Below are positions 1-48,400 of a stretch of DNA of 64,000 nucleotides, in pieces. Source of the DNA: Adineta vaga (taxonomy: Eukaryota; Animalia; Rotifera); the NCBI GenBank assembly GCA_021613535.1, contig CP075495.1, positions 248,001 to 312,000 on the forward strand, read 5' to 3'. Within the stretch, counting starts at the first letter, position 1. Each line of letters starts with the position of its first letter. The position numbers and the translations under genes were made by a program. The notes under the pieces are model-generated. The model did not search any database. It worked only from the letters and a program-made list of their open reading frames with translations, and was not told where the DNA came from.

Positions 1-389
1 CCGTCTCTTGATTTACAAAAAGCTAGTGAAAGGGCTGCTGAATTCTCGGTAATAGTTCTATACTAATTAAGTCAGTTTTAGAAGTTAAGAACACACATAC
101 TTCGACAGATATACTATCGTAAAATGCTATAATGTGAAATATATTCATTAGACTTATTACAAGTCAATATGATAGCCTACAACCTTTTCAATTATTATAA
201 CTCAAAGATGGACCATTTCTTAGAAAGTCATATGACTTAGTTTCGTACAGACAACTACGCAAGTGTGATCTGTCCAACAGTTTGATCGATTCAAAAGTTT
301 CACACACATTTTCTATGTCATATAGAATAAGATTTCATTTCTGTTGTATTAATTTGATAGAATAATTATATTTGTTTTTGTTATTTTAG

Positions 390-1236
390 ATATGGGATAG
401 AGATTTCCTGTCAGAACATAAAGCTCAATGCCAAAACTATCGTAATGATAGTGAAGAAATAAAAAAAAATAAAACATATGGCATATTAGCATCTTATCAT
501 CCATGTGGAGTTGCAGTAGGCTTTACGGAAGCAATTAAAGCTGAAGGTATGTTCATTTAAAAACTTCTATAAATAAGATTTCATGTTCTAGAGTTACAAA
601 ATCTTAGAAAATCTTGAAATGATGTGAAAAACTCTCGTTTATCATGTTTTAATAGGAATGCGATCAGTGACTCGTCATCTTTTACTCATGATCATTGGTG
701 GTTTTCTTATGCCAGATGCACTAATACATGATTGCGCCTGCACATTGAAGCTCCACTGGAATAAATGGCTAGGTACAGATATGCTTAAGTCGTCGACATT
801 AACACAACAGCTTCCAATTCATCTTGCTCTCGATAACTTCCATCAAAAAACACATTCGAGAGCAATGTGTCAAACCATTATGAAATCTGATCACCCATCA
901 CATGAAGGACGATTTATTGGTTTAAACAGTCAAGCAGCTGAACAAGCATTTCAATATATATCCCGAGCGAAATTTGCATTACGAAATTTCTCATTTCCAC
1001 ATTCGACAATAATGTTATTGATTATACTCCATCTCCTGAATTTCAAAATGACCGGCCTCAACTTAGAAACAATTGGTTTAGGATCGCTGTATTTTGGTGA
1101 TATAATCAAGGACTTTTCCCCTACACCATGTGTATATGAACGCTTCGGCTCGTTAAACGATGAAGAACTGAACAAAAATGAAGATGATGATCACTCAGAT
1201 CTTGATCATAATGTTACATCTGAAGATATGTCATAG
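390..1236 (+). CDS. 3' exons of a KDZ (Kyakuja-Dileera-Zisupton)/CxC-type transposase-like gene; 5' part unresolved or outside the window
   Basis: Exon 390-546 (IWDRDF...TYGILASYHPCGVAVGFTEAIKAE) splices through a GT-AG intron at 547-655 into ORF 658-1236. Motifs G.l....PCG, HDCAC, LDNFH...H...C and NSQAAEQ match the KDZ transposase core. Confidence 0.65.
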
Positions 1237-1896
1237 TTTTGTTTACATAATTTTTTCCACAAATAACGTCCTGTTGAATATCTGAAGATTGTACTTTTGT
1301 TGTAACTATAACTTCGTGTTTATATAGTTTTCTTCTTGGTTTGATTCTATATTTGTTATCTAGAAATTGAAAATAAATACTTGATTTGAACTGATTTATT
1401 GCATTGTTAATAAATTTGTTTAATGCATTATAATGCATTATCATGAGGAGTGTGCTAGTGATAACAATCAATCATATTTTAATACTTTTGCATTGACTAA
1501 GACGATTATCACATTCTTCAATGATTATATAATTTGATGTTAGATAATATTTTCTTATTTTTGTAAAGTAATAGGCGAAAATTCAATGTTAGTAAGATCT
1601 ATTTCTGCCAAAAAATTATCTCAAGAAAAGATCAGTGCATCATGACAATCATGTATAATTGTGAGGGAAATAAGTAATTAAAAGTACACGAATAAATATA
1701 ATAATAAAAATTAATCTTTAAATAGAACTTTTATCTCGTTTCAGAATAAGCAAAGCAATCATTATTCAGTTCCGATATTTACTTCCCTTTTACCATTTTT
1801 ATGGTTGACGCTATATGAGTATAATTTGAATTTGTACATAACAGAAAAAATAATTCAAATCATTTTGAAACACCATCTAAAATAAATAACAAGAAA

Positions 1897-2942
1897 ATGG
1901 CTCGAATATACCAAGGAGAAACAAGTTCATTATCATCAGCAATAATATCATCGAATAATGATGATATTAGTGATGATAATAATGATGATAATATGAATTC
2001 ACCAACAACCTTATCATTTCAAATATTATTAGATCAACTTAAACTCGCAAGAGATGAAAATCGAAGTTTGCAAAACGAAATTGAAAATCTAAAAGAAAAA
2101 TTAATGGAAAAGTAGATATTTAAAGATTATTCAACGATTATTTTTTGTTTTTCAATATGATTTAGAAATGGAACAATAGTTGATACAGAAAATTTTGTCT
2201 TTCATTTACCTCGCGTTGTTTTTAATCAATCGAATGGTATGTTTGAAGACACCTTAAAAAAAATTCAAAATAAAATAATGAAAAAAAATGAACAATAATC
2301 TATGTTTAAAAAACAAAAAACGATCCGATGAAAAATAGATAAAGATTTTGACTTTAATTCCTCTTCTTGATGTTTAGTTGATTTGAATCCAAATGAAAAA
2401 ATCAGAGATAGGTTTTAAGAAATTTCTTCTCAAGAAAAATCGATTTTCATTAACTACACAAAATAATCTATTTTAATTGATATTTTAAATGGAAAAATAG
2501 AATTTCATCGATTTAATTGTGAGAATATTTTTTTAATCTATTATTGAATGTGAAGTCTATTAAACTCGTGAAAGTCAATTGAAATTTTAAAAACATACTT
2601 ACAGTTGTAAATAAAGTTTGATCGATTTTAAGTGGTGTTTTTTTAATAAAAATTTGATGAAAACTAGATAAAAATCGTAACATTCACATTGATAATTCAT
2701 CATAGACAATGCATTAAAATGCATTTCAGGTTTTTTGACATTTTACACGATCGATATATTTTTTCATTGTGATTTTTGATAGTTTTTCTTCAAATATTCT
2801 TCTTATGCTATTCAATTTTTTTCAGAAGGAGATGAACAACAACAACAACAACAACAACAGAAACAACACGAGCAAGATGAAGCGAAGAAGGAAAAAGAAT
2901 TAGAAAAGAAGAAAAAGATAAAAAAGCTATCAAAATTTTTAG
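1897..2942 (+). CDS. Putative multi-exon host gene fragment (coiled-coil, polyQ), function unknown
   Basis: ATG at 1897. GT-AG junction 2112-2165 keeps frame (MEK|NGTIVDTENFVFHLPRVVF). A further exon at ~2826-2942 encodes a polyQ and Lys/Glu-rich segment. Confidence 0.35.
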
Positions 2943-3230
2943 GTTTATCTTATATTCAATTAAAAAAATGTAGACAAAAGAGAATCACAATAACATGTAG
3001 CCAGGTCATTGTAACGACAAACTGGTTGAGTAGCTGACCGCTTCTCACGGTATAGATGTTTATTCGGCTATCTCACATACCCAGAGTGTCCCCACTCTAC
3101 AATACAATGCACGCTTATATAGAGAGAGGAAGAGGAAGATGAAGAGAGAGAGGAACAAGAGGATACGCATGATTGGGAGAGATGATCACATATTGATATC
3201 ACCTCAGGGGGTGATATCTTTATCGTTACA

Positions 3231-3240
3231 CCCTCCCACT
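3231..3240 (-). promoter_or_regulatory. Polypurine tract AGTGGGAGGG
   Basis: Directly precedes the 3' LTR on the minus strand. Confidence 0.85.
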
Positions 3241-4484
3241 CAAAGCAGACGCACTCCTGGGCGTCTTTACATATAACACCACTATAATCAGAAACAAATA
3301 ACAATATGAAAAGAAAAAAAAAACGAAATAAACTGCAGAACAGAAGTTACACATACAGAAAAACTTCAGATTAACAAACTTATCTGTTACAATTATTAAG
3401 CATATAATTTCGAGCACACTGTTTAGCATGAACCAAAAAATTTTTTTTTTTTTCTCAAGCAATACACCGACAGTAACTACAGCATTACATTAGTTAATCA
3501 ACACGACTATAAAAATTTTCGACTTCACATGGAGCTTTTCTTTGGTATTTCATACAGAAATCAACACTTTCAAAGTTAATTGTCATAAGTTTCCTTTGAT
3601 CATTGATTTAATCACCAGCATAATATAAATAACCAATAAATAACACGTATTAATTTTCACATTTATCGATCACCTAATTCATTTATTTAAATATAATTTT
3701 CCTTGCCATAAAGGGAATTTAATCTAGTGCATAAACGATACCTAGAACAATCCCTAATGATATATACCATTTTGATTTAATCTATCTTTTTATCTAAGAA
3801 AGATGACTGAATGTAAAGCTATTTCACACATAAACTTCACATGTGATGCATTGGTAATCATTGTCTTGACAATTTTGGATAAGATGCAGATGGTGATAAA
3901 AAGATAATAATCGATTGACCATCTCATTGACAATAAATGATTGATGATCGTTTACGGCCGATATACAATCACCTTCATTTTCATCAATAAAAATTTGACT
4001 TATCGAATTGAGAAAAAAAAATGAATGAAGCAAGAATAAGGTATACAATCAAGAAGAAGAAACATGAAACGTACTGATGTTAATAAGGAAGTGCGTATGG
4101 GCGCCGCACTGTCGGCAACAAAACAAACCGTCCTTTAGTACGTTAACTGATGATCTGTTACATCGTTTTGCAGTACGAACAACATAATACTGCAGTTGTT
4201 AACAATGTCATGTTCTTCAGCTCTCATCTTAACCTTTCTTCTTTTCATCAATTCAAATTTTTTTTACCGTTTTCTGTTGTCTAGTTGAATAATGCTTTAA
4301 ATTTGTCCTTGTGTATAAATATCATTCATAACTTGAATTGTGTATCACCAGTTGTTTTTATTTTTTCAAATAACTTCTAAATACTGCATCATATTCAACC
4401 AAATTAGTAGATCTTGATATGGTTCATAATCGTTGTTGGTATTCCTGGCAAGGATGTTCGAACGGATAGATGGAAGTTCGTCTG

Positions 4485-34450: not shown

Positions 34451-34894
34451 TAGTCTCGAGTACCGGCGAAAAAAGTGCGCAACTGTTAAGTTCAGAACAG
34501 GAGAAAAAGGTTTTGTACTAAGATATAACACTCTTGTCAAGTTCATCGAGAAGCACTAAAAGTTTCGAATACTACTAAGAAACTTTTCTGTGGTACTGAA
34601 CTGAAAAGTTTCCAAAGAGAAGAATCTTTTTAGCGATATTCGCGAAGATTCTTTCTAGGTTAGTGGAATTCTTGTTGTGTGGGAATGGATGCTTTCTATT
34701 GAAACACTCAGATTCGCACCCTTAACCTCAACATGATGTATGATTCAGAAGAAGCTTAATGTTCACAGACGCAAACTGTTTATTACTGCAACTTCTATGG
34801 AGTTTTGACCGGAACATGGTCACCGTTATGTTTCTTTTCAAGATCAATTTTTTTAGCTTTTGAGCACTGTATATATCTGATTGAATATTGCAGT

Positions 34895-36427
34895 ATGGCT
34901 AAGATAAAAGTTATTGGTATAAGATACTCATGGCGGACGTTGTTCTCTATAGCTATAGTATTTATTCTGTACAATGTTTACACAGTTTTAATAAAAGTCG
35001 TTCTAAAAAATAAGATCGCGTGTCCCAATGATAACAATCTTATACACTGGTCTTTAACATCTCAATCTGACTATGTAATAAGTACTGATGATACATTAAA
35101 GAAAATGGGATTTAAATATGTGCACTTTGAATTAACCAATGAACATATTGACGTACTGCACAAACATGTTCCATCTGCTCCACCCAACGATTTTCGACGT
35201 TTACTGGAACGAGCACGTGCATTTGGTGACGGACTGAGACAACTAGAGGCCCTTCATATCATGAAACTGTGCGAATTTGTTGGATTTACAAAAATACCAC
35301 ATCTACCTATTAGTTCTTCGTTTTCCGATACGGACAGATTCATCACAACGCTCGTTAACTTAGAGAAAAATTTGTTTCCCTTTCTTTCGCGGTATTATCG
35401 ATCAGCACTTCACTTAAAATATTCATTCAGCGGTAGAGGCATAGTCTTAGCAGTTGGAAACCATCATGCTCAAATGGCTTATGCAAGTATTAGACTACTT
35501 CGCTCAATGAATTGCAATCTTCCTATTGAAATCTTTTACAATGGCGAGGAGGATCTGAATTCCAAAAATCGTAAGCAACTAGAGCAGTTATTATCTGTTG
35601 AAAGTCGAAATATTCAAGAGCTTATTGATGATACATTCGTCAAGGTGACTGGATGGGCTATAAAACCATTCGCAATCCTCTTTTCTCGCTTTGCTGAAGT
35701 GATTTTCATGGATGCTGACGTTGTTTTTCTTCAAGACCCTTCTAGCCTCTTTAATCATGTAGGTTATCAACGGGCTCGCGCTCTGTTTTACTATGATCGC
35801 ACAGTTGGTGAACCAAATCGGGAAACAGTCGCATGGTTATCTAGTTTGTTTCAGAAACCTTGGAACAAGCGGTTATCGCACGCAAATCGTATACTTGCAA
35901 ATCTCTCTCATGATAATCAAGAATCTGGCGTAATTGTACTCGACAAGCTTGCGCGATTTTCTGGTCTTTTAGTAACTTGTAAACTGAACTCTATAAATGA
36001 GAGGAATTCAATTACATATAAATTTTTTTATGGCGACAAAGAAACATTCTGGTTGGGCCAAGAAATGGTAGACGATGATTATGCATTTGATCCTCATTTG
36101 AGTGGTGCCATAGGGATAGCAGCGCACAATCTGAATCCTAAAGAGAAGTTAGCTACGATTTGTGGCACACAAATAGTTCATTTCGATACTGAAAGAAAAA
36201 TTCTTTGGTTTAATCAATTTGTGTTACTAGATAAATATAAATCATCCACGACTTTAGCTCATTTTGAACATTATGTACAAGAGCCTGGGATTTACAGTCA
36301 AAAATCAGACCATATATTTTGTCTTCATGTCACAGGACAAGTATTCCAGCTCACTGCAAATGAAAAAAAACTCATTGCTACTGTAATAAGTTATTGGAAC
36401 GAAGCCAAAAGCCTTATGAAACACTGA
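34895..36427 (+). CDS. Alpha-1,2/1,3-mannosyltransferase, GT71 (MNN1/MNN2/MNT-like, Mannosyl_trans3), intronless, 510 aa
   Basis: Type II N-terminal TM. Motifs GRGIV, LPIEIFY, GWAIKPFAILFSRFAEVIFMDAD (DxD), FYYDRT, QESGVIVLDK and YGDKETFWLG. First ATG at 34895. Confidence 0.9.
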   Translation: MAKIKVIGIRYSWRTLFSIAIVFILYNVYTVLIKVVLKNKIACPNDNNLIHWSLTSQSDYVISTDDTLKKMGFKYVHFELTNEHIDVLHKHVPSAPPNDFRRLLERARAFGDGLRQLEALHIMKLCEFVGFTKIPHLPISSSFSDTDRFITTLVNLEKNLFPFLSRYYRSALHLKYSFSGRGIVLAVGNHHAQMAYASIRLLRSMNCNLPIEIFYNGEEDLNSKNRKQLEQLLSVESRNIQELIDDTFVKVTGWAIKPFAILFSRFAEVIFMDADVVFLQDPSSLFNHVGYQRARALFYYDRTVGEPNRETVAWLSSLFQKPWNKRLSHANRILANLSHDNQESGVIVLDKLARFSGLLVTCKLNSINERNSITYKFFYGDKETFWLGQEMVDDDYAFDPHLSGAIGIAAHNLNPKEKLATICGTQIVHFDTERKILWFNQFVLLDKYKSSTTLAHFEHYVQEPGIYSQKSDHIFCLHVTGQVFQLTANEKKLIATVISYWNEAKSLMKH

Positions 36428-36625: not shown

Positions 36626-36702
36626 GGGTGTGGGTGTGGTTGTGGGTTTGGGTATATCTTCTTTACTCATCCACATGTACACGCACACGCACACCCACAC
36701 CC
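36626..36702. repeat. Small inverted telomere-like cassette
   Basis: GGGTGTGGGTGTGG...CACACCCACACCC foldback, about 200 bp downstream of the GT71 stop. Confidence 0.65.
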
Positions 36703-36841: not shown

Positions 36842-37050
36842 TGTAACGACAAAGATATCACCTCAGGGGGTGATATCAATATAATATCATCTCTCCCAAT
36901 CATGCGTATCCTCTTATTCTTCTCTCTCTTCCTCTCTCTATATAAGCGTGCATTGTATTGTAGAGTGGTTACACTCTGGGTATGTGAGATAGCCGAATAA
37001 ACATCTATACCGTGAGAAGCGGTCAGCTACTCAACCAGTTTATCGTTACA
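36842..37050 (+). mobile_element. Solo LTR of the TRIM family at 3010-4717
   Basis: TGTAACGA...TCGTTACA, close match to the reverse complement of 3010-3230, 5-bp TSD ATCAT (36837-36841, 37051-37055). Confidence 0.93.
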
Positions 37051-37245
37051 ATCATAACTTCAGAAAATGAACATTCTATATCAGAATCATTTTTTCTGAA
37101 TAGAACGATTCTTTTTATTCTAAAATTCAAAAAGAAAACAAAAATCAACCTCGTTTTTATGAGTTTAATCAAAGTAGAACTGTAAAAAGAGTTTTTTAAA
37201 AACCGAAAAATGAAGCAGAAAATAAAAAAGAAATTTTTCATTTTA

Positions 37246-37284
37246 TACGAGCTTTCGATGCTAATCATGCATCATCATCAGGTA
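37246..37284 (-). ncRNA. Minimal hammerhead ribozyme (3' pLTR)
   Basis: TAC-CTGATGA-T-GATGC(ATGATTA)GCATC-GAA-AGCT-C-GTA: conserved core, stem II, palindromic stem III, 3-bp stem I. Confidence 0.85.
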
Positions 37285-37704
37285 GATCATTAAAAAGATT
37301 TATTATATAGCGATATTTTATAACAATGATATAATTAGAAAGAAAAACTTGAAAAATTATATAAATTATTGATTGAGATAAATTGTTTTATCGGAATATG
37401 TAAAGAATTAATAAATAAAACTTAAGAGAATTGAGGGAATAAGATTGATTATAATAACAAAGATTTCATAATAATTAGAATAAATATAATTTTTGTCGAA
37501 ATTAAATTGGAATACAAACTGGTCTTATTCAGATAAATATAATTAACTTAATTAATGTAGATTTTAGAAGTAATTGGAAATTACGCAGATAATTAATGAT
37601 TGATTATGAAAAAAGGTTAATAAATAAATCAAATTGAAATCTTGTAAAAGATAAATAGAATAATTACGAATTAACTAATGAGAATTCATGATTGATAAAA
37701 TAGA

Positions 37705-40700
37705 CTAAAAAATACAGGTTTTAAACGAAATATCGTTGATTGCTATGTTGTTAAATTTTTTGGTTAAGATAGTTTCTTTTATTTCTCTTTTCTTCTCATT
37801 ACCTTCATTTGCTAATACAGCGACATCTTCAAATTTAAATTTGTGATTGTACGTTATTATATGATTCATTAAGTTACTATGTTTAGGTTTATCACTATTA
37901 ATGTTCTCTTGATGTTGTTTCATTCTTTCTTGGATAGTCTTACTTGTTTGTCCTATATATACTTTATCACACGCACCACAGTTAACTTGATATATAACTC
38001 CACTTTTATTGATTTGTTCACCTTTTAAATTGTTAATGAAAAAATTTCCAATTGTTTTATTCTTTTTAAAAATTATTCTAACATTGATGTTTAATTTCTT
38101 AAATAAATTTGTTAATTTTCTACTGTAGATATATGATTCTTTTCCCAAATAACTTAGTACAATGTTAATTCTATCATCATTTTGCATATGATTATTATTC
38201 GAATTATAATTACTCATGCTATTTGATGTTATCTTATTGTTATCATTATTTATATTTAAATTCATGTTGTTATTAATTATTTGATTATTAACATCACAAT
38301 TATTCTTTTGTTGCTTAATTTGATTATGTATATAAGCTGGATTATTATTAAAACAATTCTCAATTATTGAATGATTATCTATTTCATGGTTATTAATGAT
38401 TAATTTAATGTCGTGCTTAATATTCTGGTTAGTATTATTCTCATTGTTATTCAGAATATTGTTGTTTAGAATTGGTTTATTAATCATATTGTTGTTATCA
38501 ATTCTGATCTTATCTTGTTGTGGTTTCTTGTTTTTTTGATGATTACACATGGTTGATTTAAGATTATTCGATTGATTATCAATTGTATTAATATTTCTTT
38601 CTTTCTTATGATCATTGTTTAAATTATTGTTGTTATCATTCTTTATATTCAAATTCTTTTCAATATTATTAATTACTTCATGTATCATGTGTTGATTCAT
38701 AGATTTATTTAAGACTTTATCTGATATTGGATTAACTTTCTTAGGTTGTGGTGTTTCTTTAACTATGTTATTATTGTTATTATATTGTATTGATGATAAG
38801 GATGATGATATACTGCTGCTATTTGTATTATTATTCAATTTCAACTTTTCTGTGTCAGATATTAATTGATCGAAAGGTACGATAATTGATCTATTAATGT
38901 TTAAATGGTTAGGCTTGTTATATTTTATATCTTGTTTATTTATTCTTGAATTATCATAAGTTATTGGTTCAATTGAGTTATTATTTAATTGAGTATCGAA
39001 ATTCAAATTCGTATTATTTGTATGTGTTATTTCAAATAATTGTTGATTATCTAATTCTCGATTCATTACGTTATTCAGTTGATATGTATTATCAATATTA
39101 TTATTTAATGATTGAATGTTAATGTTATTTTGGTTATTATTCATATGTAAATTATGTATCAATAAGGTACTATTATTATTATTTGTTATCTGTTGTTTAA
39201 TGTTTATATTTGTATAAGATAATGATCTTCTTTTTTCTTTAGGATTTTCATCATTTAAATTAACATAGAATATATGGTTATTTGATGAAGTACTACATTG
39301 TGATAAATATCTATGATGATTAGAAATTGTTTCATTCGATTGATTACTATTAAAATTATTATTATTATTGATGCTTAATTGTTCCATTTGTATTTGATTA
39401 ACAATATCAGAATTATTACTAGTAATGTTTAATTTTTCATTATTATTATTTTCAATGGTATTAGTAGTAGTATTATTCATATTATCAATCTTTATCATAT
39501 CATTATTTATTATATTAATGTTGATATTATCTTTATTGTTATTATTGATGGTAACGTGATTGTTAGTTGTATTCATTATAATATTATTTTGATTTGTATT
39601 CAATAATATTCTTTCTCTTTCTTTAAGTAATGTTCGTTCTATTGTTCTTCTGATAATTTTTATTGGATAACCATTGTTATTAAGAACGGATTTAATATGA
39701 TCTATTTCAATGTTCAATAGTGAGTCATTTGAACATATTCGATATGCTCTTATAGTTAAAGTTCTGATCAAACCGATTTTTTGATATTGTGGTAAACAAG
39801 CATCCCATTTCATATAAAGATTGGTATGAGTTGTCTTTCTGTAAAGTGAAGTTTCAATGACATTATGATTCCGTGTTAACTTCACATCTAAGAATGCAAG
39901 TGATCTATCTCTTTCTGATTCATGTGTAAATTTTATATTGATATGTAATGAGTTAATATAATTCAAGATCTTCAATGCATCATCTTTTGTCCCTTGGATG
40001 ATAGTGAAAACATCATCTACATAATGATACCAAATCTTGATATTCAATTCTGGATTGTTTAATATGTATTTTTCTTCTAGATCACATACAAATATATTTG
40101 CTAAAATAGGAGCCAAAGGTGAGCCCATGGCTACACCTTGTATTTGTCGATAATAATTATTATAAAAGCGAAAGTGTAAATTACGTACGGCTAAGTTAAA
40201 AAGAATAAATAATTCATTTTTTGTGATTTTGTTTATTTTAGTACGTTTTTTATTTTGAAAGATAAGTTCAACTGCTATTTCAATAGCTTCAGAGACGGGC
40301 ACATTAGGATACAATTGCTCAATATCAAAACTTAACATTAATTCGTTATCATCGATTGGTTTATGTTTAATCAGTTTAACAAAACTAAATGAATCTTTAA
40401 TGTAAGATTGGCTTTCGTTACGTACTGATTTAATGACATTCGATAAAAAACCAGCTATTTCATAACTTGGAGCATTATACATAGCAATGATTGGTCTTAA
40501 TGGACAATTGGTTTTATGAATTTTCACAGTACAATATAAGACTGGAATTGAACTACCAGATATAAATAACTCATCATAGATCTGTTTAGTAATTTTCTTT
40601 TCTTTTAATAATGCAGATAATCTACGATTAATAATTCCTTCATCTATTCTAGATTCATCATTTGCTATTTTAAGGAATTTATTTGGATCACTTAGCATTT

Positions 40701-41634
40701 CATTAACTTTCTTAATATAATCTACTTTATCCATACATACTACAGCATTTCCTTTGTCAGCACGTAAAATAACCAACGATTTATCACTTTTTAATTCTCT
40801 CAATGCAACATGTTCTTCTTGACTTAAATTTGAGATACGTTTAGTTTTAATTCTATTTATCATATCATTTGAAATTATCTTGATTTGATTACAAATAGGT
40901 TGCCATGGTATTTTCTTTTTCTCTAACTCATCTCGAATTCTTATCATACCATATTCAATTTCAGTTTGTATATTTAAAGGTTGAATGACTTTCTGTCCAA
41001 TGCAAAATTTCCATCCTCGACTGAGTAATTTCAATTGAGGTATGGTTAGTAATTGTGATGATAAATTGTAAACTAATTTTTCATGAGGAAGAAGTGGAGC
41101 ACGAGTATGATCAGCAACAGCACTTAATAATGTAGATAATTTATTTTCTTGTAAATTTTTAAACCTAGCGATTTCATATTGTTGTTTATCATATAAATGC
41201 AATTTAATACGGTAACGGTGATGTGCTGAGAATGTATTAAAAAGACCATCTAATCTCTTTTCATCTAATTCTCTTCTTATTTTAATTAATTTTTTTTGGT
41301 GTTGATTATATTCTATCATTAATAATTCACGTTGAAATTTCTTAACTGCAGGTGATGATGCCAGATGTTTATTAGCTAATTTAAAACGGATGAATTTTGG
41401 TGTTAAATTATAAATAAGACACATTCTAATATAATCAATATCACATTGTACTTTTGCTAATTTAACTGTCAGTCTCTCTATATACCTAAATCTTTTTAAC
41501 GCGCATTCGCCATACTTCAATCGAATGCAGTTAATCAAAGTAGAACTGTAAAAAGAGTTTTTTAAAAACCGAAAAATGAAGCAGAAAATAAAAAAGAAAT
41601 TTTTCATTTTATACGAGCTTTCGATGCTAATCAT
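37705..41634 (-). CDS. Penelope RT + GIY-YIG endonuclease with an ~475-aa Asn-rich insertion
   Basis: [12 protein letters not shown]...[49 protein letters not shown] and [19 protein letters not shown]...R...H...E. Uninterrupted 1309 codons. Confidence 0.96.
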
Positions 41635-41650
41635 GCATCATCATCAGGTA
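41612..41650 (-). ncRNA. Minimal hammerhead ribozyme (5' pLTR)
   Basis: Identical to 37246-37284. Confidence 0.85.
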
Positions 41651-42046
41651 AGAAAAATATGCGGATTTACTGATCAATGAAAGTATATAAAGATACTTTA
41701 ACAAAGGTTTCAATCGTTCCTTGTCATACACATATTCAATCAAATTCGATAGAAACAAATATTACAAAAGGTAACCCCATCTATCGCTATTCATGATTCA
41801 ACTCTATACTTCGGATTGACACCATGTCGCATGTTTTATTAAAAATAGAAATCAATACAAAAAAGAATAAAAAACCAACAAGAAAAATAAAAACAAAAAA
41901 AAATAAAAATAGAATTTCAAACAAAGTTTATTAAATCATTTTTTTCAATACATTTTCCTCAAACGATGATTATCTAACTCTGCAACATCTTTGAATACAC
42001 CTGACTTTGTACTCCACATACAGAAAAAGAAGGAACATTATTGAAC

Positions 42047-44235
42047 ACAAATGGAACAATTAAGCATCAATAATAATAATAATTTTAATAGTAATCAATC
42101 GAATGAAACAATTTCTAATCATCATAGATATTTATCACAATGTAGTACTTCATCAAATAACCATATATTCTATGTTAATTTAAATGATGAAAATCCTAAA
42201 GAAAAAAGAAGATCATTATCTTATACAAATATAAACATTAAACAACAGATAACAAATAATAATAATAGTACCTTATTGATACATAATTTACATATGAATA
42301 ATAACCAAAATAACATTAACATTCAATCATTAAATAATAATATTGATAATACATATCAACTGAATAACGTAATGAATCGAGAATTAGATAATCAACAATT
42401 ATTTGAAATAACACATACAAATAATACGAATTTGAATTTCGATACTCAATTAAATAATAACTCAATTGAACCAATAACTTATGATAATTCAAGAATAAAT
42501 AAACAAGATATAAAATATAACAAGCCTAACCATTTAAACATTAATAGATCAATTATCGTACCTTTCGATCAATTAATATCTGACACAGAAAAGTTGAAAT
42601 TGAATAATAATACAAATAGCAGCAGTATATCATCATCCTTATCATCAATACAATATAATAACAATAATAACATAGTTAAAGAAACACCACAACCTAAGAA
42701 AGTTAATCCAATATCAGATAAAGTCTTAAATAAATCTATGAATCAACACATGATACATGAAGTAATTAATAATATTGAAAAGAATTTGAATATAAAGAAT
42801 GATAACAACAATAATTTAAACAATGATCATAAGAAAGAAAGAAATATTAATACAATTGATAATCAATCGAATAATCTTAAATCAACCATGTGTAATCATC
42901 AAAAAAACAAGAAACCACAACAAGATAAGATCAGAATTGATAACAACAATATGATTAATAAACCAATTCTAAACAACAATATTCTGAATAACAATGAGAA
43001 TAATACTAACCAGAATATTAAGCACGACATTAAATTAATCATTAATAACCATGAAATAGATAATCATTCAATAATTGAGAATTGTTTTAATAATAATCCA
43101 GCTTATATACATAATCAAATTAAGCAACAAAAGAATAATTGTGATGTTAATAATCAAATAATTAATAACAACATGAATTTAAATATAAATAATGATAACA
43201 ATAAGATAACATCAAATAGCATGAGTAATTATAATTCGAATAATAATCATATGCAAAATGATGATAGAATTAACATTGTACTAAGTTATTTGGGAAAAGA
43301 ATCATATATCTACAGTAGAAAATTAACAAATTTATTTAAGAAATTAAACATCAATGTTAGAATAATTTTTAAAAAGAATAAAACAATTGGAAATTTTTTC
43401 ATTAACAATTTAAAAGGTGAACAAATCAATAAAAGTGGAGTTATATATCAAGTTAACTGTGGTGCGTGTGATAAAGTATATATAGGACAAACAAGTAAGA
43501 CTATCCAAGAAAGAATGAAACAACATCAAGAGAACATTAATAGTGATAAACCTAAACATAGTAACTTAATGAATCATATAATAACGTACAATCACAAATT
43601 TAAATTTGAAGATGTCGCTGTATTAGCAAATGAAGGTAATGAGAAGAAAAGAGAAATAAAAGAAACTATCTTAACCAAAAAATTTAACAACATAGCAATC
43701 AACGATATTTCGTTTAAAACCTGTATTTTTTAGTCTATTTTATCAATCATGAATTCTCATTAGTTAATTCGTAATTATTCTATTTATCTTTTATAAAATT
43801 TCAATTTGATTTATTTATTAACCTTTTTTCATAATCAATCATTAATTATCTGCGTAATTTCCAATTACTTCTAAAATCTACATTAATTAAGTTAATTATA
43901 TTTATCTGAATAAGACCAGTTTGTATTCCAATTTAATTTCGACAAAAATTATATTTATTCTAATTATTATGAAATCTTTGTTATTATAATCAATCTTATT
44001 CCCTCAATTCTCTTAAGTTTTATTTATTAATTCTTTACATATTCCGATAAAACAATTTATCTCAATCAATAATTTATATAATTTTTCAAGTTTTTCTTTC
44101 TAATTATATCATTGTTATAAAATATCGCTATATAATAAATCTTTTTAATGATCTACCTGATGATGATGCATGATTAGCATCGAAAGCTCGTATAAAATGA
44201 AAAATTTCTTTTTTATTTTCTGCTTCATTTTTCGG
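42047..44235 (+). mobile_element. Inverted 5'-truncated Penelope copy; ORF 42051-43733 encodes the Asn-rich region and GIY-YIG only
   Basis: The 560-aa protein is identical to the C-terminus of the full ORF. The 3' UTR differs by a few substitutions and 1-bp indels. Confidence 0.95.
44154..44192 (+). ncRNA. Minimal hammerhead ribozyme (inverted copy)
   Basis: Same 39-nt motif on the plus strand. Confidence 0.85.
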
Positions 44236-45173
44236 AGTTTAATCAATTAATGATTATTCTTTCTCTTTTTCTTTCTCACCTTTAACATTCATTATTCTAA
44301 CATTGATATGAGTATCTATTATTAACCGTGGAATTAACTTATTATCTTATCATTTTTCATCTTACACTAACACACATTAAGCTGTTTGTTCATATTCATC
44401 ATTTCTATCCCATAACGTTAGTTTATTTGTATTGATTCGAATGAAATATCCGATTAGATTTGTTTTAATATGGGATCAGTTAAATAATCTCAGGAGTTTC
44501 AGTATATATTTGTCGATCATATGTGTCATTGGGTATGAGATCGAATATGATTTTTTATATATGATCTCTATTACGACATCATCATGTTAACATAGAAACT
44601 GAAAGATTAAAACATTAAGAAGTTGAACATTTCAATTCTTTTTCTTACCTCTTACGTTTATTGACATCTATCGCTTATTCTTTTTACATGCTATTTGAAT
44701 TTAATTTTCAAGAAATAGGATATTTAGAATATTTTAGCAGATGAAAATTCGGAACTAAATAAATCAGCTGAATAACGTTTGTTCGTTATATTTCTTTTTC
44801 AAGATTCCATTTATTTACATCTTGAGATTTCGATTATATTCAAATCGATTTTTTTTCAACATGTTTCGCTATTCATTTTCATACATCAATCATTAGTCTT
44901 ACTTTAAACATATGAAATGAACATAGATATAGTTGTATGGATCAATTTTTATGATAAAAAGTCTTTCTCGAAGAAAATGATCAAATATCGTATTTTTTTA
45001 TTTGATTTTGTTATTTCAATTTCGTTATTGATATAAAAAACGACAACAGTTACTTTTGAAAAAATGAAAAATTCAACTGAGACATCTCATAGATAAATAG
45101 ATAGATAAGATAATATATGATTAATGATCATTACGTAACTCCTTGAATCGATTCATATTTTCATTTGATCATC

Positions 45174-45478
45174 CCCAGGACGGACGTTCCGGCCTCCGGA
45201 TCCGAAAGGAACCTGCCAGAAATCACGCCTTTCCGAGGATATTCCGGACAGTTCCAGCTAGTTCCAAAGGGTTCCAACCGGAAAACAAAGGAGAGTGGAA
45301 GCAGTATTCCGATCGGAATTTCTCGGACTGTTCTGGTGAATTCCAGTTGTTTTCCGACTGGAACTTAGTCAGAAGCGAGTGGAAAAGTCCGAAAATATAC
45401 GAGTCGGAATCCTGCTTCCATGAAATGACCGGAATGTTCTGGTTCCGACCGGATCCGGCTCGGATTTTTCGACCTGGG
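45174..45478. mobile_element. GC-rich MITE with CCCAGG...CCTGGG termini
   Basis: Short TIR, apparent 2-bp TSD TC, internal TTCCGG/CCGGAA motifs, sharp GC contrast with the flanks. Confidence 0.7.
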
Positions 45479-48400
45479 TCCCATAATAAATCACGTAGGT
45501 AATCTAACAATAATCAGTTGTATTTGAAAAGATAAGTTTATGATTTATCGGTTATACTCATAGATTATATAAGATTCTGACATTTATACTGTTTTGAAAT
45601 ATTGGAATGATCGTTTTTTCCGAAAAATTTTGAATTTTATTGCTCATATATATAGTTGAGAATAGTGATGATTCTGTTGTTATTCTTCTTTTTCAACATT
45701 GAACAATATGCTTTTTTCCATGATATTGAAAAAGAAAGAAACTCTTGGATATGGAAAAAACAAACAACAATTTTAATTTGTACATGCTAACTTCTATGAT
45801 CTTCACTATAAGATGGAACATCATTTTAACAAACTTCTACTTTCATATTACATTAAAAGTAAAGAAAATAAAAGGAGAAATCAACTGTTCAAATAGAAAT
45901 CTAAAGGATAGATGATAACTGCTCTTTCTTATTGCATTTCTTGACTTAATAGTATACCAAATTTCTCCAACAACGATAACCATATTTTAATCTTTCAAGA
46001 TATTTTTTAAATAAAAACTGAAACGACTGATTTTCATAAAAAAATGCTTTATTTTCTAAATTATATCAAATAGTTAAGAAAGATGAATAAGCAATGCGTT
46101 TTTTGCACTATTTTGTGCACAAGTTATTGTTGTACACAATGTAATCAAATGAGTCGTGGTTTAAAATTCGAACGTTTAGAAACATGTTCTAATAGTGTCA
46201 TGAACCGCGATGAAATCAATTCCCTTGCACAACGAATTAAACAGGTGAGTTCATTTGAACAATCATCAAATTAAAAAAAATGAAAATATTGTAGATGGAT
46301 TCAATTATAAAACCATTTCAGTTTTATCCCACTTATGTCTTTGACGAAACAAAACATGTAGTAGACGTAGTCGCTAAGGAATATCTTGAAAAGGCGACTG
46401 CTGATACACATCACATCTTGTTCCTGCTGATGTTTCTGGTGATGGAAACTGTTTATATCATTCTATTGTTCTTTTGATGAACAATCCATTGGTGACGGCT
46501 AGTGAATTGCGAGGTATAAATTCTTTTTCTTGATGTTATCCTGAATTACGATTTGAAAACAATTTTTAGTTCGAACTGTTATTAAACTTATAACTAATGA
46601 AAACCACTACGATAGCATGTATACACGATATGCAGAAAATACCGATATTATTATTCAAGCAGCGTGCAAAAAGGAAATGTATTCGGAAATACATGAAGTT
46701 GCTGCATTATGCAACGTACTACAATGCAACATACGAAGTGTTTATCCAAGAATTGATTTTGAATATTACAAAGCAATTTGGGATAGCGTCTTTACACCTA
46801 TTCCACCTGTTATTGGAAATTGTACTATTGTAGTCTTATGGTCATGTACTTTAGATGAAAAAGATGCTCGAAAAACATATAACGGCTTCTGGAGACCAAA
46901 TCATTTTGTGCCACTTCTGTCTCCACCTATTCTTAATGAAGTCAATAGTGAATCAATATCACTTGTTGTGGTAAGTTAGCGAATTGTCAATAGAAAAATT
47001 AAAGCGTTGAAAGTTTTCTGTAGGCACCTGAAAAGAGAACGTTCAAAAACAATACTGTTACTCAAATAAGGATACCTGAATTTCAATCTTCTTCAAGTAG
47101 ACGATTACGAAATGAAGAGAACATTGGAGATAATTTCATCCAAACAGATCCGCCAATTGCAATGGAAACGGAAAAGAACGATAAGGAAGAAAGACGTCAA
47201 ATTCAGCTTCAGAAGAAAAGAGAGCAAAGCCGATCGAGCCGAATGAATGAAACAGAAGAAGAACCGGAAATTCGTCTACAGAAAGACAGAGAACAAACTT
47301 AAATAAATAGAACCAATGAAACTGAAGAAGGACGAGAAATTCGTCTACAAAAAGAAAGAGAACGAATTCAAATTAATAGAATGAATGAAATAGAAGTACA
47401 TCAGAAAATCCGACTCGAGAAAACGAGTGAAAGAAACCAATCAAGTCGAACGAACGAGTTAGAAAAACAAGATCAAATTCGACTGGAACAACAAAAGAAA
47501 CGAAGTCAAGCAAATAGAGCTGAAAAGAAACATGAAACTGTTGGTGGCGGACAAGACTCTGTCCGCTCATCTTGGCCTGAGCTAATTTCTCGTGATTTAA
47601 AAGAAACTCGTTTGCAGCAATTTTTAGAACAGATGTCTATGTCAAAATTAGCTGAAGCTACCTGTGCAGTTTGTAATATTCGCACTCCAGCAAAAGATTC
47701 GAAGTAAATACCAATCTAAAAAATTCCTAATATGAATTTGCTAAAAGTTTCTGAAGATCTGAAAAATTTAATCAAGAACATAATGGAGAATGCTGTCACT
47801 CGCATTGATGATAGTAATACACATACGACATCATTTTTTAAAAGTATGTAGAATTAATTTAGTTCAAAAAATTTACAGATCTGTTTCCTTTTAGATCAGT
47901 CAAATTTTGATTCGTCATCTTTCTGCTGTGAAAATGATATTCTCTTCTACAAAAGTGGCTTATTTCAAACCAACAGGGTGAAAATGTGTATCCTCTGTCA
48001 AAAATGCCATACTTCTTTTTCAAAAGAAAAAATACCGAAGTTTTCAGCTGCTAATAATATGTGGCTAGGTGATATACCTAAGGAATTACAAGGACTGACG
48101 ATTCCAGAAGAAAAATTAATATCTCTCTATCGTCACAATAGCTGTATAATAAAGCTTCAATCACCTTTTCACTCAACTACAACTGCTCAAACAGCATTAA
48201 AGGGAAATTGTATTACGTTTCTTCAAAATGTACCAAATATCGTCACTAGTTTACCACTTAAAGTAATCTTTATTGGAGCTCGACCACCTGATCGTCTTCA
48301 TCTTAGAAAAGTACTAACCGTTCGTAAGAAAAAAATTATTGAAACGTTACAATGGTTGAAAAAATAAAACATACTTTATCAAGACATCAACATAAATCTG

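Follow-up and report, generated by a model that had tools for sequence, protein, structure and literature searches.

A Pen2a_Av composite in Adineta vaga that probably arose in one integration by dual-strand priming

Introduction

A 7-kb block of the Adineta vaga genome is bracketed by two copies of a 12-mer and carries two outward-facing 3′ ends of a Penelope-like element (PLE), with a stretch of non-Penelope DNA between them. This raises the question of whether such a structure could derive from a single integration and, if so, how two copies in opposite orientation and a spacer came to occupy one target site. Part of the answer was known beforehand, since a 2013 study had reported the element together with its inverted upstream piece, and a dual-strand model with two start sites followed in 2024. 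Both the element, Pen2a_Av, and the architecture have already been published (PMC3846280, PMC8557442); the locus is a textbook Penelope example and not a new kind of insertion, and the novelty that the original prediction attached to it was overstated. Its value is that of a fully resolved natural example, with exact ends and with paralogs that serve as a proxy for the empty site.

Results

We first consider the outer limits of the insertion. In the 64-kb window (the whole stretch of DNA that was analysed, 64,000 nucleotides), the 12-mer GAGTTTAATCAA was found exactly twice, at 37161-37172 and 44235-44246, as predicted. Its expected count was 0.02, and two or more occurrences appeared in 0 of 100 shuffles. 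The left copy of this target site duplication (TSD; 37161..37172) is an exact repeat with a single homolog in the paralogous empty sites, while the right copy (44235..44246) is contiguous with the right flank, a contig covering 44206-44515 bridging arm, TSD and flank in three runs. The last 8 nt of the left copy (37165-37172, TTAATCAA) are ambiguous, since this microhomology can be assigned either to the target or to the end of the element tail. That TTAATCAA ends the 3′ extension of the element was revealed by the internal junction between pseudo-LTR (pLTR) and body (41531-41538), which upheld the proposed 8-nt overlap. The TSD thus measures 12 bp as an exact repeat, or 4-12 bp once microhomology is allowed, and its target is AT-rich.

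Between these copies, the full-length Penelope unit (Pen2a_Av, N1 lineage) occupies 37165..41530 on the minus strand and comprises the body and a 540-nt 3′ UTR. It terminates in a 3′ tail extension of 31 nt, or up to 39 nt with the shared bases (37165..37203, minus strand), which the left arm and the pLTR carry and the right arm lacks. The 5′ pLTR of 120 nt (41531..41650, minus strand) is a direct copy of the 3′ end of the element including the tail, with 100% identity to 37165-37284. A spacer of 396 bp (41651..42046) sets off the upstream pLTR from the inverted 5′-truncated copy (42047..44235, plus strand), which contains the 3′-terminal 2.19 kb of the element, that is, part of the N-rich linker, the EN and the 3′ UTR. 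This arm is the reverse complement of 37203-39391 with only two mismatches, which fall in the 3′ UTR, at 43794 (corresponding to 37644) and 43797 (corresponding to 37641). It ends at 44234/44235 and directly abuts the 12-mer without any tail, and the two arm ends lie exactly one tail apart. The predicted order of full-length minus-strand element, 396-bp spacer and inverted truncated copy was therefore recovered with its coordinates resolved. The label 'double-tailed' is nevertheless misleading in Penelope terminology, because the tail is present at one end only.

The full-length unit carries an intact ORF of 1309 aa (37705..41634 including the stop, minus strand), whose ATG at 41634 falls within the pLTR (41531-41650). 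Pfam searches with the uncut 1309-aa and 560-aa ORFs gave no matches because the Asn-rich linker masks the domains; once the protein was cut, a reverse transcriptase (RT) core, RVT_1 (aa 397-562; 39949..40446, minus strand; E 1.3e-9, 38.6 bits against a cut-off of 29.6), and a GIY-YIG endonuclease domain, PF01541 (37750..38001, minus strand; E 9.4e-7, 29.5 bits against a cut-off of 22.6), the latter in the last 166 aa, were obtained. The linker itself, the N1 insert between RT and EN, has approximate limits of 38185..39567 on the minus strand, drawn from the translation and PMC3846280. Only a marginal match to a group II intron-like RT (E 0.032) resulted from a PDB sequence search with the N-terminal 700 aa, and an exact-protein look-up of the 1309-aa ORF returned no match in public assemblies, a search that the records of the source genome possibly lie outside. 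In the text of PMC3846280, Pen2a_Av (scaffolds 942 and 800) is described with a 1,309-aa ORF in which an Asn-rich insert of 1.5 kb separates RT from EN. When the window was read downward from 41607, it began with the same letters as the rows Pen2a_s942 and Pen2a_s800 of the supplementary alignment. Judged by this sequence identity, on which its placement in the PLE clade also rests, the element is the published EN-containing Penelope-like retrotransposon Pen2a_Av, of the N1 lineage, in a bdelloid rotifer genome, and its assignment to the canonical EN+ Penelope-like elements (Penelope/Poseidon-Perere group) was borne out by this identity together with RVT_1 and GIY-YIG. A hammerhead-like core, CUGAUGA...(GAUGC/GCAUC stem)...GAAA, was visible by eye at 37258-37282 and, in the pLTR, at 41624-41648. 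Rfam searches with the whole insertion and with the 3′ end alone detected no hammerhead (E up to 5-10) and no other credible family, and this region folded no better than shuffled sequences (z = -1.17).

The spacer is 27% GC and includes an A-rich stretch; it is not Penelope sequence, and six-frame translation gave no ORF. Searched against its own genome (100.8 Mb in 6 contigs, the mitochondrial genome not being among them), it matched only itself. A sensitive BLAST search covering the window and every locus retrieved produced only A-rich low-complexity matches, a 23-mer from it had no match in metagenome contigs, and a scan for bacterial promoters and terminators, which is ill-suited to a eukaryote, gave nothing above chance. 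The proposal that the spacer came from a third template was not borne out, as the genome offered no other match to the spacer.

We then asked whether the assembled structure was real and whether it represented one event. Inverted repeats as long as 2.2 kb pose problems for assembly, the contig support is piecewise, with no single contig spanning the whole 7 kb, and at position 39401 the assembly differs from all three runs. On the other hand, contigs from runs of 2015, 2021 and 2022, belonging to three independent studies, extend across body/pLTR, pLTR/spacer, spacer/arm and arm/TSD/flank and thereby confirm the right outer junction along with four junctions inside the insertion. The depth of the arms was 1.9-2.1 times that of the body, and a collapsed-arm contig at twice body depth began exactly at 42047. 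The same inverted piece, gap and ORF are present on two scaffolds of the 2013 assembly, Table S1 of Arkhipova et al. 2013 giving an inverted piece, a ~440-bp gap, the full ORF and a 77-nt 3′ copy for scaffolds 800 and 942 (PMC3846280). As the TSD and the paralogous empty sites also tie both ends to one site, the chance that the inverted structure is an assembly artefact is close to negligible. The insertion site itself lies inside a Helitron-like host repeat, in a subtelomeric, TE-rich region, and this flanking repeat has at least 5 copies in the genome. Two of these paralogs could be aligned through the junction, L028 at 78% and L029 at 77% over ~520 nt; both are contiguous at the site and have a single 12-mer homolog but lack the spacer; therefore, the whole 7 kb, spacer included, is one insertion inside one TSD, as had been proposed. 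Two independent nearby insertions, with the spacer as the original host DNA between them, would account for its non-Penelope sequence. However, this DNA is missing from the empty sites, which hold only one 12-mer homolog, no TSD copies occur at the inner ends 41651 and 42046, and the spacer is found nowhere else in a genome with at least five copies of the flanking repeat, making this reading highly improbable. Reads also showed that copies vary by 0.2-0.6%. In this clone the composite probably exists as two ~99% versions, with T or C at 41825, so an empty allele is unlikely; among the loose ends listed, none lay at 44235. As a separate observation, run X18 of organism B contained only a low-depth 207-nt piece of the N-rich arm and no spacer.

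Discussion

The findings presented here suggest that the Pen2a_Av composite, made up of a tail-bearing full copy, a 120-nt pLTR, a 396-bp spacer and a tail-less inverted 5′-truncated copy, probably entered the genome in one integration through dual-strand priming. In this single event, 4-12 bp of target were duplicated. A dimeric RT/EN may have made a staggered break, both 3′ ends of which would prime reverse transcription. On the top strand, synthesis would begin at a distal start site and give the tail-bearing copy, helped by the 8-nt microhomology between target and tail, while on the bottom strand a proximal start site ~31-39 nt upstream would yield the tail-less copy, where the microhomology is imperfect (G..TTTAA). 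The two cDNAs would then be joined head to head, and the spacer could be either the 5′ leader of a long template, that is, the flank of a now-lost donor copy, or captured filler. A staggered break whose two 3′ ends both act as primers, already part of the original prediction, fits the geometry of the locus and has been demonstrated in vitro with a purified Penelope-like protein: PAc cleaves and extends both strands and uses two RT start sites separated by the tail (PMC11167929).

An earlier version of the model held that two different RNAs were primed at their very 3′ ends and that a third, unrelated RNA provided the spacer by template switching. The presence of the same 2.19 kb in both arms means that one RNA region was copied twice, which is compatible with two separate RNA molecules and with a multimeric transcript; the arms do differ by two substitutions, and the text of PMC3846280 describes unrelated DNA captured as spacers by A. 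vaga Penelope elements. Nevertheless, apart from the one-sided tail and these two substitutions the arms are identical, so a second kind of template RNA need not be invoked. Published work accounts for the tail difference by a choice between two internal RT start sites, and 2 differences in 2,189 nt fall within the variation accumulated after insertion (~0.2-0.6% in reads). Moreover, the arm-specific SNPs could not be assigned to other genomic copies, since the assembly contains no other member of the Pen2a_Av family to supply distinct RNAs, only 67-85% fragments of related families, nor any source for the spacer. We consider this version unlikely, and its claim of priming from each RNA 3′ end was not supported. 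It is still less probable that a simple insertion acquired its inverted arm and spacer afterwards, by snap-back self-priming of one cDNA or by later rearrangement (inverted duplication, recombination between copies or microhomology-mediated deletion). According to the text of PMC3846280 (Arkhipova et al. 2013), self-priming is the favoured origin of head-to-head Penelope repeats and microhomology-mediated deletions are frequent in A. vaga, and the near-identity of the arms could reflect conversion. Snap-back would, however, mirror the sequence adjacent to the junction, whereas here the arm begins at its inner end in the middle of the ORF (equivalent to 39391) and faces spacer and pLTR, so that no palindrome is formed; a later internal rearrangement would leave unexplained the exact abutment of the tail-less arm on the second TSD copy.

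Dual-strand priming in one integration thus remains the preferred reading. A bolder extension of it, which we regard as quite unlikely, would make the spacer a 5′-transduced piece of the donor locus, the sole surviving trace of a donor that was deleted or that lay in another genome, the latter implying horizontal arrival of a single-copy Penelope family. The insertion would then document, in vivo, dual-strand priming from the two RT start sites, which have to date been observed only in vitro.

In the twin priming of L1, which Ostertag and Kazazian are said to have described in 2001, the second 3′ end of the staggered break reportedly primes a second cDNA and creates an inverted 5′ segment, both insert ends being cDNA starts. 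The two L1 segments are non-overlapping parts of one RNA, whereas here both arms hold the same 2.19 kb, with a spacer between them, and an inversion of the L1 type was rejected for this reason.

PAc, the Poseidon element of Anolis carolinensis (Frangieh et al. 2024, Mob DNA 15:12), offers a closer parallel, since both target strands are cleaved and extended and two RT start sites lie inside the ORF start with the tail between them. Counted from the first ATG, the corresponding sites here would lie ~65 and 103 nt downstream (pLTR coordinates 41570 and 41531), as read from the sequence alone. PAc initiates in vitro independently of target homology, while the tail-bearing junction described here overlaps the target by 8 nt, which we counted against the mechanism. 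In addition, PAc belongs to a different clade, the rotifer elements grouping with the flatworm Perere elements.

With typical PLE insertions, which according to the available text of PMC8557442 and PMC3846280 combine an inverted 5′-truncated copy with a one-sided 30-40-bp tail, the present one shares a pLTR derived from a partial tandem copy, an inverted 5′-truncated copy beside the upstream pLTR, a 30-40-bp tail at one end, a short TSD, an AT-rich target and an ORF start in the pLTR (Evgen'ev & Arkhipova 2005; Arkhipova 2006; Craig et al. 2021, Fig. 2). Published examples show abutment, overlap or a palindrome where this locus has a unique 396-bp spacer between inverted copy and pLTR, and its pLTR is short, 120 nt against ~218 nt in a related Pen2a_Av copy. 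The closest match is with the Pen2a_Av scaffolds 942/800 (Mob DNA 4:19, Fig. 2d), which, as far as that source describes them, have the 1,309-aa ORF, the ~440-bp gap, the first 77 ORF nt repeated at the 3′ end and an identical sequence start; the 2013 text reports neither a TSD nor a spacer for this copy (its figure lying outside this statement; PMC3846280). Those scaffolds broke ~300 bp into the inverted arm and are now shown to be truncated inside it, while here the arm runs 2.19 kb to its tail-less 3′ end and, in this chromosome-level copy, a 12-bp TSD frames the whole unit. Altogether, this example may be cited as supporting dual-strand target-primed reverse transcription among Penelope-like elements, offering tail-bearing and tail-less ends one tail apart together with a unique spacer at the head-to-head joint.

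Anatomy of the composite insertion

The anatomy of the insertion was established with a repeat finder and by reading the junctions directly. The 12-mer GAGTTTAATCAA occurred exactly twice in the window (37161-37172 and 44235-44246), with 0.02 occurrences expected by chance. Between the two copies, we found a full-length minus-strand unit (37165-41530), a direct minus-strand 120-nt copy of its 3′ end serving as pseudo-LTR (pLTR; 41531-41650, identical to 37165-37284), a 396-bp spacer (41651-42046) and an inverted plus-strand arm (42047-44235), which is the reverse complement of 37203-39391. Only two substitutions, both located in the 3′ UTR, separated the arms: 43794 and 43797 in the right arm correspond to 37644 and 37641 in the left. 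A tail of 31 nt beyond the stop point of the right arm, or up to 39 nt with the bases shared with its neighbours, was present in the left arm and in the internal 120-nt copy. Its terminus in element sense, TTGATTAA, coincided with the final eight bases of the left 12-mer and, because of this overlap, the true target site duplication (TSD) spans 4-12 bp. The original prediction had described these coordinates, the spacer length, the 8-nt overlap between TSD and element and the small 3′ UTR differences correctly.

The junction and spacer stretch was present in sequencing runs of at least four studies from 2013 to 2022. When Logan contigs of three studies (2015, 2021 and 2022) were placed on 38950-44900, single contigs covered parts of the structure and none covered all of it. 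In each of the three runs, one contig crossed from the body into the pLTR (39362-41598), one from the pLTR into the spacer (41621/41622-41824), one from the spacer into the arm (41922-42076) and one from the tail-less arm through the 12-mer into the right flank (44206-44515). The pLTR side of the second of these contigs measured 29-30 nt, the maximum possible from a 31-mer graph. The collapsed arm started at 42047 (42054 in the 2022 run) and ended at 44183, with 1.9-2.1 times the depth of the body in the three runs. The left junction was found in scaffold 800 of the 2013 assembly. At 39401, 10 nt past the arm boundary, the assembly carries A and the contigs of all three runs T at full depth, likely a consensus error or a haplotype difference.

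The element is the published Pen2a_Av

The minus-strand ORF at 37705-41634 encodes 1309 aa. As a whole it gave no match in Pfam; when the protein was cut, RVT_1 in the first 700 aa (E 1.3e-9) and GIY-YIG in the last 166 aa (E 9.4e-7) both exceeded the curated cut-offs. The translated linker between them is about 460 aa long and mostly asparagine. The opening letters of the alignment rows Pen2a_s942 and Pen2a_s800 (supplement, PMC3846280) agree with those of the window when it is read from 41607 towards lower coordinates. For scaffolds 800 and 942, Table S1 of that study lists an inverted piece (element positions 2217-2517), a 439-454 bp gap and then ORF 1-3903, and for scaffold 800 also a repeat of the ORF start at the 3′ end, 77 nt long (PMC3846280). 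The element had been published before, as had its architecture and the dual-strand model, and their novelty is low. Both scaffolds stop about 300 bp inside the inverted arm, so the older assembly could not reveal the 2.19-kb arm, its tail-less end or the second TSD copy.

Evidence for two versions in the clone and for a single integration event

Position 41825, in the spacer, carried T and C in all three runs (alternative letter, 32-44% of depth), the body contigs carried alternative letters at no fewer than 13 sites, in mosaics that differed from run to run, and the junction contigs had about 0.6 of the body depth. Taken with the 2013 assembly, in which two scaffold copies are 99% identical (PMC3846280), these data indicate that the composite exists in the clone in two versions with slight divergence between them, for which the two homologues are the simplest explanation. 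No other copy of the family was found in the assembly, only fragments of related families (67-85%). Since both versions would carry the composite, an empty allele is unlikely in this clone, and paralogs were the best available proxy.

The insertion is flanked by a multi-copy host repeat. Downstream, this repeat contains an ORF with the Helitron-associated domain DUF6570 (PF20209, E 1.2e-28; 47978-48367, plus strand), and it is probably a Helitron-like element with at least five copies near chromosome ends. We joined the left flank, including one 12-mer, to the right flank and aligned this empty-site model to two paralogous host-repeat copies that lack Penelope. Both L028 (78% over 526 nt) and L029 (77% over 519 nt) aligned uninterrupted through the joint, and L028 carried one GAAATTCATCAA in place of the 12-mer, with no additional sequence there. 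It follows that the spacer is not ancestral host DNA and that all 7,062 bp between the 12-mers are inserted. The inner ends (41651 and 42046) showed no TSD of their own. The contiguous paralogs and the absent inner TSDs thus support a single integration event, as had been proposed from the sequence alone.

Other features of the neighbourhood

On contig 2, the window occupies kb 248-312 counted from one end. A roughly 210-bp dispersed repeat at 36842-37050 (at least 40 copies on all chromosomes, 80-95% identity) sits about 110 bp to the left of Penelope; it is missing from the contig 1 paralog and hence represents a small MITE- or SINE-like mobile insertion. A second dispersed repeat, of about 305 bp (45174-45478; at least 30 copies, 91-95% identity), is an insertion at this locus when compared with the paralogous copies of the host repeat. 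Immediately left of the start of host-repeat homology (about 36708), a G/T-rich run resembling telomeric-type sequence (GGGTGTGGGTGTGG...; 36626-36702) and its near-complement, 33 nt further on, make up a hairpin with a 22-nt arm. Further left, an uninterrupted plus-strand ORF of 540 aa (34805-36427) contains a fungal-type Mannosyl_trans3 domain (PF11051, E 3.4e-49) and has a 70% paralog at contig 2:184115-185120; it is possibly a gene of foreign origin in a bdelloid subtelomere.

Origin of the spacer

The spacer has 27% GC, includes an A-rich stretch and contains no ORF. No match to it was found elsewhere in the 100.8-Mb genome (six contigs, which do not include the mitochondrial genome), the fetched loci or the metagenome contigs. 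It may represent a 5′ leader of the template, in which case it would derive from the flank of a donor since vanished, or it may be captured filler; capture of unique host spacers is already known from A. vaga Penelope families (PMC3846280). Of the words sampled from 41300-42400, 27% and 12% were present in two runs guessed to be RNA (X14 and X17, respectively), and part of the pLTR, spacer and arm region may be transcribed. Both the pLTR and the 3′ UTR show a CUGAUGA...GAAA core with a GAUGC/GCAUC stem; Rfam gave no hammerhead match there, and the region folded no better than shuffles.

Proposed priming from both target strands

Two ways of generating inverted arms were weighed. Classical L1 twin priming does not fit, because both arms share the same 2.19 kb. 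Snap-back of a single cDNA is unlikely, since the sequences flanking the joint are not mirror images. We instead favour priming from both target strands. A staggered break in the target would allow the top-strand 3′ end to prime at a distal site, where the 8-nt target overlap is visible, and the bottom-strand 3′ end to prime at a proximal site with an imperfect overlap (G..TTTAA); the two cDNAs would then be joined head-to-head at 42046/42047. The two different template RNAs of the original prediction are not shown by the two arm substitutions, which do not exceed the background variation between versions, and neither these RNAs nor its third template is needed.

This layout is typical of Penelope-like elements, in which a partial tandem copy forms the pLTR and often adjoins an inverted 5′-truncated copy, and so is a tail of 30-40 bp at one end only (PMC8557442; PMC3846280). 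With a purified Penelope-like protein, both target strands were cleaved and extended, reverse transcription began at two adjacent internal sites early in the ORF, and the tail corresponded to the sequence separating them (Frangieh et al. 2024, PMC11167929). The arm ends of this insertion lie exactly one tail apart, both no more than about 105 nt past the first ATG.
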